A DNA stretch of 63,078 bases, filler included, from Octopus bimaculoides (taxonomy: Eukaryota), in the NCBI RefSeq assembly GCF_001194135.2. It is 5 parts of 5 records of this genome, joined end to end, with 100 filler letters (N's around TTAATTAATTAA, not from the genome) between each part and the next. Parts side by side here need not be neighbours in the genome. Positions count along the whole stretch, not along the records: positions 13,692 to 37,974 come from NC_068992.1; 4 more parts are not named here. One strand, given 5' to 3'. Below, one piece after another: positions 21,601-33,600 of the stretch. Position 1 is the first letter of the stretch. Each line of letters opens with the position of its first letter. Made by a program: the position numbers and the translations under genes. The notes under the pieces were generated by a model. That model was not told where the DNA came from, ran no database searches, and saw only the letters and a program-made list of their open reading frames with translations.

Positions 21601-24600
21601 TGAATACCAGCATTGATATGTCTGCGTCCCCGTAACTTAGCGATTCGGCAAAAGAATCGATAAACTAAGTAACAGGCTTTAGAAACATAGTACCGGGATC
21701 GAGTCATCTAAATTTCTTCAAGGCGATGCCCCAGCGTGGCCGCAGTCTAATGACTGAAACAAGTAAAAGGGTCATGCTGGTTTGAAATTTCGCCACAAGC
21801 CCATCAATTTCGGAGGAAGAGCTGAATCGATCACATCGACCCTTACTTTATCGATAAAGATATGAGTGTGTACAATATATCGAGACTAATTAATAAAATA
21901 TTGAATTGGATTATTATAATGTCTGTAGATGATCTTCTAATCCGATGAAACGAATTGTGTGGGCATAAAAAGAACGTCTTCTCTTTGGGAGTTAATTAAG
22001 AAGCATTTATAAGATTATTTGACCTTCTAAAGATGACAACCAGATGTTAATCTAATTATGTCTTTAAAATGGTTGGTTGTTTTTAATAATACCATAATCT
22101 TTGATACAGGGTCTGAATAAAAATGGCACTCTGCCGGTTACAGCGATGAATGTACCAGTTGATTCGATCAACGAAACAGCCTGTTCGTGAAATTAACGTG
22201 CATGTGGCTGAATACTCCACGAACACACGTACCCTTAACGTAGTCCTCGGGGGTTATTCAGTGTAAAACAGAATGTGAAAAGGCTGGCCCTTTGAATTAC
22301 AAGTACAACTCATTTTTACCAGCTGAGTGAATGAGAACACAAGGTGCAGCCGAGAATCGAACTCACGACCTTACGATAAAGAGCTGAATACGTTAACTAC
22401 TAAGCTACGCCCCGACACCACGGTCTGAATAAATGACAGGATTATTACAGCTGGAACGTCTCTGATCATCCGCCTACTTAGTCTAAAGATCATGGTTAAC
22501 TTCGGGCTGTAGAAAAACAACAATTATTTTAAGAGTACTAATATCAAATTGCGAGAATTGAAGTCTCATTCTTTATTCGAGAAAACGTTATTTATCAATC
22601 ACAGATAAAATTCAATTATAGTTGATTTACAGGAAGTTAAATCTACATAAAAACATTGAAATGCGTAATAAATTAAAACGTGCTGTATCAAGCTCTAGCC
22701 AAATCTCCCTGGAATTACATAGGACAACTTTAAAAACTTTTAAAAAGAAAAGATACATTGGATAAAGTAATCGTCGATACCCGCATCTGACGAAGTGGAA
22801 ACGCTGCAATGGCTTTGACCGTAAGTCTTCAAAATCAAAACTCACCTGGCACAAAATATACACTTTTATGTAAATATAATGAGATGTTTATTACAAATTT
22901 GACTATGGCGTTTGGTAACCATCCCCTCAAGTAATCCAACATCACACACCAATATCCAGGAAGGCGAATTAAGTTACGGTTAATTTTTTTCTGTAAACAG
23001 TAATGGCGATAGACAAGTGTTTGGCGATCATAGGCGATACAGATACATGCGCTTTTCGAACTCGACGTTAGTTTCGAAATAATTTAATTGGTTGATATTA
23101 AAGTTATCTTTTATAGATTTTAAATACTGCTATATATGGACATTTTCTCAGGCAGTGACATAGGTAATTTTAGGTAACCAAAGTTGGTTCAATTCGCAGT
23201 ACATATATTAGATTCTACTGTATGAATATTTAGTATGTTTAACGCTTCCTACAGAATCTTTTCCTCAACCATATTCTCGATATAATTAATTTTTCCCTCG
23301 CAATTAATTAAGTCAACAAGGATTTTCACATGTTGATGAAGATATCTGATGACCGAAATATCAAGCAATTGACTATTTTTTCCGCAATAGCGCGTGGATA
23401 AATGAATAGCTAAATATTAAAAAAATAATAATGATAATAATAATAATAAATCAGTGAGAATGTTTTAATAAAGTATCTACCCACCATGCATATGCACGTC
23501 CCACAGTGGGGCTCTCCTAAAAGCATTACATTTGAAAACCATTCTGTTCCATTTTGGTATACTTTTCCTTGGAAGTTACAGGCTGGATTTAAAAATAATG
23601 GTTAAGCGTTAAGAGAGAATATAACAAGAGAAAGAATGACATATTAGCTACTCTATATCTATTACTATTAACGAATCTCCACGGATACATATATATATAT
23701 ATATATATATATATATATTTCATTAGAATTAGAAACTTCGAGAGACATTAACTTAATCGTCTTTAACGGTGAAACTGGATGTAGATAAGGCTATAAATTA
23801 TAAGTTATAAATATTAGGTTAAAACCACGTAGATGGACAAAGTCTTTTTTACCAACGGAAATTGAATGTAGTTTACGTTATGAGTATTTAGGAACGTCAA
23901 TATATATGAATTAAATCGCTTTTGACGATGGAACTCGGGGTAGATAAAGCTATAAACACTAACGTGTGTATATATAAGATTTTGTAAGCTTAAACCTTAT
24001 AAACGATCAACGTGCAATGACTAAAGANNNNNNNNNNNNNNNNNNNNNNNNNNNNNNNNNNNNNNNNNNNNNNNNNNNNNNNNNNNNNNNNNNNNNNNNN
24101 NNNNNNNNNNNNNNNNNNNNNNNNNNNNNNNNNNNNNNNNNNNNNNNNNNNNNNNNNNNNNNNNNNNNNNNNNNNNNNNNNNNNNNNNNNNNNNNNNNNN
24201 NNNNNNNNNNNNNNNNNNNNNNNNNNNNNNNNNNNNNNNNNNNNNNNNNNNNNNNNNNNNNNNNNNNNNNNNNNNNNNNNNNNNNNNNNNNNNNNNNNNN
24301 NNNNNNNNNNNNNNNNNNNNNNNNNNNNNNNNNNNNNNNNNNNNNNNNNNNNNNNNNNNNNNNNNNNNNNNNNNNNNNNNNNNNNNNNNNNNNNNNNNNN
24401 NNNNNNNNNNNNNNNNNNNNNNNNNNNNNNNNNNNNNNNNNNNNNNNNNNNNNNNNNNNNNNNNNNNNNNNNNNNNNNNNNNNNNNNNNNNNNNNNNNNN
24501 NNNNNNNNNNNNNNNNNNNNNNNNNNNNNNNNNNNNNNNNNNNNNNNNNNNNNNNNNNNNNNNNNNNNNNNNNNNNNNNNNNNNNNNNNNNNNNNNNNNN

Positions 24601-30600: not shown

Positions 30601-33600
30601 TATATACATACACATATATGTATGTATATATACACATATGTATTCAATGATATTTGTATAAGTGCACACACATACACATATACACACATATCTATATACA
30701 TATATGTACGTGTGCATTAGTGTGTGAGTGAGTGAGTGTGTGTGTGTGTGCACGTGTGTGTATGTGCGTGTGTGTGTGTGTGTGTGACCAAAGAAACAAC
30801 ATGAAAGACATTTGGTAAAGAGAGAAATGGTGCTACAACGTGATGCGACTTACTCAAACATTCCGGACAACAATGGGACATATTAAACTTGTTGACAGTA
30901 GCAGTACAACTTAAAGGAGGACAAGTTCTTGGAGTGCAATTCCAGGCATTCTTGCCGATCTGAAAGAAAGAAAAGAAAATTAATGAAAAAAATTTACACA
31001 ACAAAGAAAAAATAATAAAGAATAGTTCATACCTGATCAAAGAATTTTCATGCAAATAAGAGCTTTATAAGACTCACGTCTATACATTTATGCATACGCG
31101 CACACATACATATATACTTCTATGTCTGTACTTGGAAATTATACATAAAGCACGCATAAAGCATACATACACACATGCGCACGCACACACGTATATGTGT
31201 GTATGTATGTGTGTGTGTGTGTAAGATTGATATATATATTCCTGCGTGTTTGTTGGTAAGATCAAGGTTTTAGACATACAAAATATATTGCTAATTACAC
31301 CAACAACTATTGTATATTATTTTATTGGTGACTAATTCAAAGATTTAATCCTGTTTTGATCATGGGTGATTTTGTTCACAACTATATATTAGTTGTTATA
31401 TGTGTGTGTGTATGTGTTTGTGTTATGTGTATATATAGATATATATATGTACATATATGTATATATACACGTGTGTGTATGTATGCATATATATATATAT
31501 ATATATATAAAGAGAGAGATATATAGATGTATATATATATGTACATATATATACACGTGTGTGTGTGTGTGTGTGTGTGTGTGTGTGTGTGTGTGTGTGT
31601 GNNNNNNNNNNNNNNNNNNNNNNNNNNNNNNNNNNNNNNNNNNNNNNNNNNNNNNNNNNNNNNNNNNNNNNNNNNNNNNNNNNNNNNNNNNNNNNNNNNN
31701 NNNNNNNNNNNNNNNNNNNNNNNNNNNNNNNNNNNNNNNNNNNNNNNNNNNNNNNNNNNNNNNNNNNNNNNNNNNNNNNNNNNNNNNNNNNNNNNNNNNN
31801 NNNNNNNNNNNNNNNNNNNNNNNNNNNNNNNNNNNNNNNNNNNNNNNNNNNNNNNNNNNNNNNNNNNNNNNNNNNNNNNNNNNNNNNNNNNNNNNNNNNN
31901 NNNNNNNNNNNNNNNNNNNNNNNNNNNNNNNNNNNNNNNNNNNNNNNNNNNNNNNNNNNNNNNNNNNNNNNNNNNNNNNNNNNNNNNNNNNNNNNNNNNN
32001 NNNNNNNNNNNNNNNNNNNNNNNNNNNNNNNNNNNNNNNNNNNNNNNNNNNNNNNNNNNNNNNNNNNNNNNNNNNNNNNNNNNNNNNNNNNNNNNNNNNN
32101 NNNNNNNNNNNNNNNNNNNNNNNNNNNNNNNNNNNNNNNNNNNNNNNNNNNNNNNNNNNNNNNNNNNNNNNNNNNNNNNNNNNNNNNNNNNNNNNNNNNN
32201 NNNNNNNNNNNNNNNNNNNNNNNNNNNNNNNNNNNNNNNNNNNNNNNNNNNNNNNNNNNNNNNNNNNNNNNNNNNNNNNNNNNNNNNNNNNNNNNNNNNN
32301 NNNNNNNNNNNNNNNNNNNNNNNNNNNNNNNNNNNNNNNNNNNNNNNNNNNNNNNNNNNNNNNNTATATATATATATATATATACAAACAACAACGTGGC
32401 GATAGAGGGTAGTGGTTGAAATAACTAACTTAAAAGAAAATAACACCAAAAGAAGAACAATGTGAGAAAGAAAGAAAGAAAGAAAGAAATACTGAGTAGA
32501 AGAGAATGGATATGTGGTCTGGTGCGGATTCTAAATTCAAAGAAAATGTTAAAATGAGGTAGACAGAAAAAAAATACCAATGAATTCATTTGTCTCGAAA
32601 CATTAAACACATTTTAAAGAATGGCCGATTCTATTTGCATGAGGTTGCGGCGACAGAATGGGGTAGGGTCCAATTATTCAAAGGTGCGGTGATATACGAT
32701 GCTGTATCATAGAGAGAATTCGCTGACGAAAAAATAAATAAATAAATCGACACACGATAAATATAAAAGAAATACGATAAAAATGGAAGAATGGTTTATA
32801 TATATATATATATATTTATATTTATATATATGTAAACTTCTGATAAACTCTTGTTTATCCTGTTGTCATTTGCACTCTACGTGTATTGTGTGCCTGCACA
32901 CCAATACCCGGGGATGATACAGGTAACGGATACCGATAGTATATACGGATATTCTATCACTTAGTTGGGTATTATAACCGCTAACTCTGTTTACACACAC
33001 ACACACACACACACACACACACATATATATATATATATATATATATNNNNNNNNNNNNNNNNNNNNNNNNNNNNNNNNNNNNNNNNNNNNNNNNNNNNNN
33101 NNNNNNNNNNNNNNNNNNNNNNNNNNNNNNNNNNNNNNNNNNNNNNNNNNNNNNNNNNNNNNNNNNNNNNNNNNNNNNNNNNNNNNNNNNNNNNNNNNNN
33201 NNNNNNNNNNNNNNNNNNNNNNNNNNNNNNNNNNNNNNNNNNNNNNNNNNNNNNNNNNNNNNNNNNNNNNNNNNNNNNNNNNNNNNNNNNNNNNNNNNNN
33301 NNNNNNNNNNNNNNNNNNNNNNNNNNNNNNNNNNNNNNNNNNNNNNNNNNNNNNNNNNNNNNNNNNNNNNNNNNNNNNNNNNNNNNNNNNNNNNNNNNNN
33401 NNNNNNNNNNNNNNNNNNNNNNNNNNNNNNNNNNNNNNNNNNNNNNNNNNNNNNNNNNNNNNNNNNNNNNNNNNNNNNNNNNNNNNNNNNNNNNNNNNNN
33501 NNNNNNNNNNNNNNAAGAAGAAGAAGAAGAAGAAGAAGAAGAAGAAGAAGAAGAAGAAGAAGAAGAAGAAGAAGAAGAAGAAGAAGAAGAAGAAGAAGAA

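Follow-up and report, generated by a model that had tools for sequence, protein, structure and literature searches.

The sequence analyzed here very probably comprises seven exons that form the 3′ end of the coding region of an octopod chordin gene, which lies on the minus strand and is covered from the C-terminal half of its CR2 module to the stop codon (Table 1). One of these exons, with a length of 66 nt, can with high confidence be predicted to be constitutive and to provide a linker of 24 residues, which would keep the modules CR3 and CR4 separate. The window, that is the whole stretch of DNA that was analyzed, has a length of 63,078 nucleotides and originates from Octopus bimaculoides; all seven exons are located in the 24-kb piece from NC_068992.1. 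After splicing they form one open frame up to the TGA, and the resulting C-terminus of 216 residues aligns without any gap and with 81% identity to a protein of Argonauta hians. The original prediction had placed the CR3 and CR4 exons next to each other and thereby arrived at a fusion of the two modules over a single residue, with the downstream Tolloid site being lost. The exon edges on which it was based could be confirmed by direct reading, as CCPECL is followed by an extra A before gtaagt (phase 1) and CC-TGT directly follows ...aaatccag, and a direct join of the two exons is indeed in frame and gives CCPECL-T-CNFQG. However, the two exons are not adjacent, as the 66-nt exon is situated between them, and the proposed fusion is refuted by the Asp-bearing linker of 24 residues which this exon encodes. 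It had also been considered that a symmetric linker exon might be hidden in one of two N runs, whose positions were given correctly, or might be a microexon. Such an exon with phases 1-1 does exist, but it is found in plain sequence and in neither of the two gaps, and with 66 nt it is no microexon.

Table 1. Exons and introns of the predicted octopod chordin gene in the window. The last column gives tblastn identities to the Argonauta hians protein (P0003) and blastn similarity to the Argonauta locus (L002).
Feature	Position	Strand	Splice sites and phase	Match to Argonauta
Exon, C-terminal half of CR2 (31 residues + G)	37594..37687	-	acceptor ttttcag|, donor G|gtcagt, ends phase 1	85% identity; blastn island
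Exon, 15-residue CR2-CR3 linker and N-terminal half of CR3 (34 residues)	33697..33842	-	donor gtaagg, ends phase 0	84% identity, E=6e-25; blastn island
Exon, C-terminal half of CR3 (IGKNAWNC...HCCPECL + A)	30854..30959	-	donor A|gtaagt, ends phase 1	85% identity; blastn island
Intron with 42-N gap (30516-30557) in (TA)n microsatellite	29033..30853	-		no collinear similarity (blastn)
CR3-CR4 linker exon, 66 nt	28967..29032	-	acceptor cgttgaccag|, donor GAG|gtaatt, phase 1-1	see text
Intron with 975-N gap (24028-25002)	23583..28966	-		
Exon, N-terminal half of CR4 (CC|TGT..., 32 residues)	23485..23582	-	acceptor ...aaatccag, donor gtgggt, ends phase 0	74% identity; blastn island
Exon, C-terminal half of CR4 (31 residues + C)	18533..18626	-	donor C|gtaagt, ends phase 1	tblastn match; blastn island
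Terminal coding exon, (R)KRKKSDNKTGRRKH then TGA, basic tail	16663..16709	-	acceptor attatttag|	93% identity to C-terminus; blastn island

The linker exon consists of readable sequence outside both assembly gaps, and its canonical ag/gt boundaries were read directly. Read jointly with the two split codons, the exon specifies 23 residues, and the frame stays open with the exon included. In a tblastn search of the 24-kb piece it was matched by the Argonauta chordin with an E-value of 1.4e-4, and on the DNA level an island at 28960-29046 was found to be 77% identical (E=6e-12) to positions 58955-59041 of the Argonauta locus. When the whole piece was compared to this locus by blastn, the collinear islands corresponded to the seven exons and two non-exonic stretches. 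The latter are located at 36835-36930 and 35530-35698. In the DNA alignment, the splice sites of the linker exon are the same in Argonauta (cag| acceptor, GGAG|gtaatta donor), the similarity falls off beyond the exon edges and the differences between the two exons include six synonymous codon changes. All stop-free candidates of the intron with AG..GT boundaries and phases 1-1 (n=241) were furthermore scored against the Argonauta linker as a null test. The linker exon reached a score of 85, the best unrelated one among these 241 candidates a score of 28, and 565 control candidates drawn from the opposite strand and from further introns scored at most 20. A tblastn search of the piece with the decapodiform linker yielded only E-values of 3 or more, the best match (29038-28997) being at the correct location but in the wrong frame; the exon is established by direct reading and by the Argonauta protein and not by this search. 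Its inclusion in octopus mRNA would be expected from its conservation and from the situation in related species.

Indeed, an in-frame linker with Asp-containing motifs was present in the only available cephalopod cDNA contig as well as in all checked cephalopod, gastropod and bivalve models except the one from Pomacea, which contradicts a loss of the Tolloid linker also on the level of relatives. The cDNA contig (L001, SRR27666063) runs from CR2 over CR3, a linker of 27 residues and CR4 into the 3′UTR. In the protein from Argonauta hians (GAB1606046.1), the sequence CCPECL-KANKPIDRADTALALNDKNMNGA-CNFQGK likewise contains a 24-residue linker, which is encoded by its own exon at about 58968-59036 of the locus, between the CR3 and CR4 exons, and the locus of Sepia pharaonis (L003) exhibits a 72-nt linker exon of phase 1-1 (ttattgtag|AC...GGAG|gtaagg). 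The proteins from Argonauta and Sepia are gene models. Among 20 other chordin and Sog sequences, 19 have a CR3-CR4 linker of 20-46 residues. The exception is the Pomacea model with four residues, which looks broken at this position and appears to suffer from the same fault of a missed linker exon. No short linker was found among the other molluscan chordins with intact CR3 and CR4 that were examined.

A different possibility is that the 66-nt exon is a mostly included cassette, which certain tissues or stages would leave out, thereby giving rise to a minor linkerless isoform that would be Tolloid-resistant at this position. As the exon is symmetric, its skipping would keep the frame, and the same holds true for the corresponding exons of Argonauta (66 nt) and Sepia (72 nt). 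However, symmetric phases are common for exons at domain boundaries, a skipped form was not encountered, the linker is part of the single cDNA contig and all annotated molluscan isoforms that were checked keep it, among them X1 and X2 of Babylonia as well as two models from Patella caerulea. A cassette therefore appears improbable. Similarly small is the chance that a regulated skipping abuts CR3 and CR4 and renders chordin uncuttable by Tolloid at the downstream position, or that, as a milder variant, the cephalopod site has moved from D-x-N-M to DTAL. The latter is suggested by the fact that two decapodiform sequences do not contain the D-x-N-M motif.

Even less probable is a main product in which position 30854 is joined directly to 23582, resulting in a one-residue spacing of CR3 and CR4 without any downstream Tolloid site. 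Although this join is in frame, it would have to bypass an exon that is conserved and bears canonical splice sites, and between two octopod lineages the reading frame of this exon is under purifying selection, which would not be expected for unused sequence. Moreover, in every examined chordin or Sog whose CR3 and CR4 are intact, the linker comprises at least 20 residues.

Across the two gaps, the frame is carried by splice sites and not by contiguity. The 42-N gap is situated inside an intronic (TA)n microsatellite which continues on both sides, and the 975-N gap is also intronic, with runs of ATC, GTT, ATT and AAT (ATC/ATT-type triplet repeats) in its upstream flank. As the Argonauta locus does not contain any N and the spliced product aligns gap-free to the protein derived from it, no coding sequence is lost in the gaps relative to this orthologue. 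That one of them nevertheless holds a further coding exon and that the true linker exceeds 24 residues is the least likely of all readings, since only the 975 unread bases speak for it, whereas this gap-free alignment, the (TA)n run around the smaller gap and the already closing phases (1 to 1-1 to 1) speak against it.

The assignment to chordin is based on the product itself and on its orthologue. Pfam VWC was detected in three stretches of the 216 residues (E=9e-18), with CR2 being represented by its C-terminal half only, and the product exhibits the three C-terminal VWC/CR modules of chordin and Sog followed by a short basic tail and TGA. The linker of 24 residues also fits the unstructured linkers of about 20-45 residues in this family. 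For CHRD, which in chordin and Sog is located between CR1 and CR2, a match (E=5e-12, above the curated cut-off) was found upstream of the same CR modules in the Argonauta orthologue; the octopus exons upstream of the C-terminal half of CR2 fall outside the piece. An exhaustive HMMER search with a cephalopod C-terminus (P0001) returned 17 proteins, of which the named ones were all chordin, chordin-like or Sog, and the match from Gigantopelta leads on to named molluscan chordins. A word-indexed search with the naively spliced peptide, on the other hand, returned only one Logan protein and missed the Argonauta orthologue that is present in the searched collection. An absence from this search consequently says little. 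KCP and BMPER/crossveinless-2 contain runs of VWC modules with linkers of a few residues, followed by VWD/TIL, and do not contain CHRD. They were considered because a one-residue linker would suit such tandem VWC proteins, and were rejected on the basis of the linkers of 15 and 24 residues, the stop codon after CR4 and the CHRD of the orthologue. A C-terminus at 18501 was also dropped, as splicing from C|gtaagt onto the conserved last exon was preferred. No RNA family from Rfam was found anywhere in the 24-kb piece. Judged by its sequence, the octopus chordin gene is an ordinary one, and its gene model should include the linker exon and the terminal coding exon. In annotation, small linker exons with symmetric phases are easily overlooked when they lie between CR modules.

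Astacins of the Tolloid/BMP1 type cleave with Asp in the P1′ position, and in vertebrates cleavage of chordin is expected to release BMP. As reported by Piccolo et al. 1997 and Scott et al. 1999, the second Tolloid/BMP1 site of vertebrate chordin is located in the CR3-CR4 linker. The octopus linker contains four Asp, one of which lies within the motif D-x-[N/D]-M-x-G-A-C that is common to gastropod and bivalve chordins. As this mollusc-shared motif and three other Asp are present, the Tolloid site does not appear to be missing from octopus chordin, and the linker offers a candidate site. The P1′ residue is most likely the Asp of LN|DKNMDGAC, which gastropods and a bivalve share; a second candidate is found in AS|DTAL, whose Asp is invariant across the four cephalopod sequences. 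A firm assignment of a cleavage site to any one Asp is not supported by the sequences, as the two decapodiform linkers show no clear Asp where the D-x-N-M motif would have it (VKPELPKEGVC) and as the Asp adjoining CR4 in octopus (NMDGAC) is an Asn in Argonauta (NMNGAC). Cleavage of a BMP-1 peptide substrate at A|D is mentioned in PMC10696041. The searched literature contained nothing specific on Tolloid-site sequences or cleavage data for molluscan chordin. By analogy with vertebrate chordin, it is proposed that the linker forms a flexible, protease-accessible stretch that would be cut by an astacin of the Tolloid/BMP1 type N-terminal to Asp, and that this cut may separate CR4 from the rest of the protein and lower its affinity for BMP. 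If chordin had lost its downstream Tolloid site, an altered mechanism of BMP shuttling in cephalopods would have followed; the evidence points to the opposite. The motif D-x-[N/D]-M-x-G-A-C provides a concrete residue target for mapping the molluscan Tolloid site.

Among known systems, the partial chordin from Argonauta hians (annotated as hypothetical protein Ahia01_000887000; locus BAAFZT010000048.1) is the orthologue and shares with octopus the layout of the seven exons, the 66-nt linker exon of phase 1-1 and the linker length. The two species differ in 7 of the 23 residues that are specified by this exon plus the split codons, and the flanking introns of Argonauta are with about 1.1 and 1.4 kb much shorter than those of octopus (1.8 and 5.4 kb). 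The chordins of gastropods and a bivalve (Lottia goshimai, QKV26403.1; Patella, Haliotis, Gigantopelta, Babylonia, Littorina, Batillaria and Solemya) have linkers of 20-23 residues that end in D-[IV]-[ND]-M-x-G-A-C, which corresponds to D-K-N-M-D-G-A-C in octopus. The N-terminal half of these linkers is unlike that of octopus and among the compared sequences DTAL occurs only in those from cephalopods, although TTAL is present in Babylonia. A fifth CR follows CR4 in some of these chordins, such as the one from Gigantopelta. Arthropod Sog (Artemia, Colias, Adelges) has the same architecture as octopus, including a CR3-CR4 linker, but its linkers are longer (30-40 residues) and end in ..IL/VL-x-x-GG-C instead of the D-x-N-M-x-G-A motif. 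Vertebrate chordin (salmonid, Denticeps) resembles the octopus protein in its C-terminal array of CR2, CR3 and CR4 and has a linker of 21-27 residues, in which an Asp shortly precedes CR4 (MMQA|DGxRHC). The sequences around this Asp in vertebrates and molluscs do not align with confidence, and the distance from the Asp to the first Cys of CR4 is seven residues in molluscs compared to five in fish chordin (MMQA|DG).

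The chordin gene lies on the minus strand of the NC_068992.1 part of the window (13692-37974), an AT-rich piece (35% G+C) with ten N runs. The original prediction had described the cysteine-rich BMP-binding modules CR3 and CR4 as fused via a one-residue linker. Both exons on which it relied are present, and reading them directly joined does give an in-frame CCPECL-T-CNFQG. The fusion itself is, however, an artefact of an overlooked small exon that intervenes between the two. A phase 1-1 linker exon had been considered as a fallback, and it does exist, but it is located in readable sequence and not in one of the assembly gaps.

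Features of the chordin gene and its introns in the NC_068992.1 piece (slash, splice junction)
Feature	Position	Strand	Remarks
CR2 C-half exon	37687-37594	-	sequence reading
Conserved non-coding block (CR2-CR3 intron)	36835-36930		collinear with Argonauta 52466-52573
Short interspersed repeat	36035-36195		about 100-160 nt
Second non-exonic collinear stretch	35530-35698		
CR2-CR3 linker and CR3 N-half exon	33842-33697	-	sequence reading
CR3 C-half exon	30959-30854	-	after ...tttcag; ends with extra base A, then gtaagt
CR3-CR4 linker exon	29032-28967	-	66 nt, phase 1-1
CR4 N-half exon	23582-23485	-	after ...aaatccag; begins CC TGT; then gtgggt
Transposon remnant	19981-20580	+	last two introns
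CR4 C-half exon	18626-18533	-	ends ...TGC CAA C/gtaagt
Transposon remnant	17879-18289	-	last two introns
Terminal coding exon	16709-16663	-	encodes (R)KRKKSDNKTGRRKH, then TGA

A word-indexed protein search using the spliced peptide with the CR3 exon joined straight to the CR4 exon yielded a single relative, P0001, encoded in a 938-nt Logan contig (L001) of SRR27666063. The Argonauta hians orthologue was not returned, although it represents a cluster in the collection searched and has many long exact words in common with the query; negatives from such a search do not equal absence. L001 is an intron-less cDNA with a 3′UTR and one frameshift in an A-run, and its two reading frames together cover, in order, the CR2 C-half, CR3, a 27-residue linker (HDQAAQSVLTTDTALTMVKPELPKEGV), CR4 and the stop codon. 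The mRNA of this relative carries a normal CR3-CR4 linker, most similar to the Sepia pharaonis linker. As the frameshift is a single base within CR3 (about bases 315-330), P0001 as called begins out of frame and the true frame extends upstream via CR3 and the CR2 C-half. Low-stringency tblastn of the L001 linker against the piece gave weak matches only, two of them at 29038-28989 (-). The exon read there (cgttgaccag/AT ACG AAC AAG CCA ACT GAC GCT TCA GAC ACC GCT TTA GTA CTG AAT GAT AAA AAT ATG GAT GGA G/gtaatt) is stop-free and its phase on entry and exit matches the need of the flanking exons.

An exhaustive HMMER search with P0001 identified P0003, an 800-residue partial chordin from Argonauta hians (GAB1606046.1) with CHRD and VWC domains; the identity of this assembly is confirmed by PMC12682272 and PMC13652810. 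Its C-terminus reads ...CCPECL-KANKPIDRADTALALNDKNMNGA-CNFQGK..., with a linker equal in length to that of the window; of the 23 residues specified by the linker exon together with the codons split at either end, 16 are identical. The Argonauta locus (BAAFZT010000048.1) is free of gaps, and in it the linker occupies its own exon (about 58968-59036), preceded by the CR3 C-half exon (57703-57810) and followed by that for the CR4 N-half (60477-60596). In a blastn comparison of the whole piece with this locus, the seven exons and two stretches outside exons aligned collinearly, the linker exon forming an island (28960-29046 versus 58955-59041; 77% identity, E=6e-12). Pairwise alignment showed that the cag/ acceptor and the GGAG/gtaatta donor are kept, that similarity drops beyond the exon and that six codon differences are synonymous. 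In Sepia pharaonis (GCA_903632075.3) the linker is likewise encoded by its own phase 1-1 exon, of 72 nt. As a chance control, all AG..GT, stop-free, phase 1-1 candidates of 30-150 nt in the intron (n=241) were aligned locally with the Argonauta linker (BLOSUM62): the linker exon scored 85 and the best unrelated candidate 28, while 565 candidates from the other strand and three other introns reached at most 20.

Spliced together, the seven exons form a single 216-codon open frame closing with TGA, whose product is 81% identical to the Argonauta C-terminus with zero gaps. Judged by this alignment, every coding residue is accounted for, and the gene is an ordinary chordin orthologue. P0003 also matches 16707-16666 at 93% identity (KRKKSDNKTGRRKH, the Argonauta C-terminus), so the exon for the CR4 C-half stops at its donor and is joined to the terminal exon. 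A read-through C-terminus (...KFERKPNIS*, stop at 18501; 18501-18532, -) was rejected given the consensus donor at 18533 and the conserved terminal exon. Both gaps named in the original prediction are intronic: one of 42 N within a (TA)n run extending on either side, and one of 975 N between the linker exon and CR4, adjoining ATC/ATT-type triplet repeats. As the splice sites carry the frame, it is independent of the gap lengths.

The introns hold further elements. The roughly 100-nt conserved block shares near-identical stretches with Argonauta (AATGGTGGGAAAAA..TATGTCATAAAAT and GTGACTGGCTTTGATAT.AAGT.TTGAGGCGTTTTATT), has no Rfam match and lies outside the gene model of Argonauta; it may act as a regulatory element within the intron. 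The interspersed repeat occurs at least ten times, in both orientations, in the 72-kb Argonauta locus (about 80-85% identity); it looks SINE-like and is shared by octopod lineages. Of the transposon ORFs, one of 199 codons weakly matches DDE_3 (Tc1/mariner-type transposase; E=9e-5, below the curated cut-off) and the other matches zf-RVT at E=7e-7 (a zinc-binding region found in reverse transcriptases of the non-LTR type).

Skipping of the symmetric linker exon would preserve the frame, and this symmetry is the one feature that would speak for the skipped isoform proposed earlier. No skipped form was found: the sole cDNA contig includes the linker, as do all annotated molluscan chordin isoforms examined. 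A Pomacea canaliculata gene model ('hypothetical protein C0Q70_02412') shows just four residues (GREF) past CR3, followed by non-CR4-like sequence, which is probably a similar small exon missed by automatic annotation rather than a real short linker.

Tolloid/BMP1 proteinases cleave N-terminal to Asp. The window linker contains four Asp residues, and therefore the downstream Tolloid site, which had been described as possibly missing, is not absent by sequence. As candidate cleavage sites, LN/DKNM would rank first, being conserved across molluscan classes and seven residues ahead of CR4, and AS/DTAL second. The BMP-1 peptide substrate noted in PMC10696041 is cut at A/D; cleavage data for molluscan chordin were not found in the literature searched. 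DTAL, further upstream in the linker, is invariant in all four cephalopod sequences. Two decapodiform-type sequences (L001 and the Sepia locus) keep DTAL and end in VKPELPKEGVC and VKPELLREGVC, without the Asp of the mollusc-wide D-x-[N/D]-M-x-G-A-C motif. The site assignment is therefore tentative, and in the decapodiform lineage the position of the downstream protease site may have changed. The linker measures 20-46 residues in all gathered chordin/Sog sequences with an intact C-terminus. It ends in D-K-N-M-D-G-A-C in the window, in D-K-N-M-N-G-A-C in Argonauta, and in D-[IV]-[ND]-M-x-G-A-C in one Solemya protein and all gastropod chordins listed (Gigantopelta, four Haliotis, two Lottia, three Patella, Babylonia X1 and X2, Littorina and Batillaria). 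Fish chordins carry the vertebrate sequence MMQA-DG-x-RHC immediately ahead of CR4.
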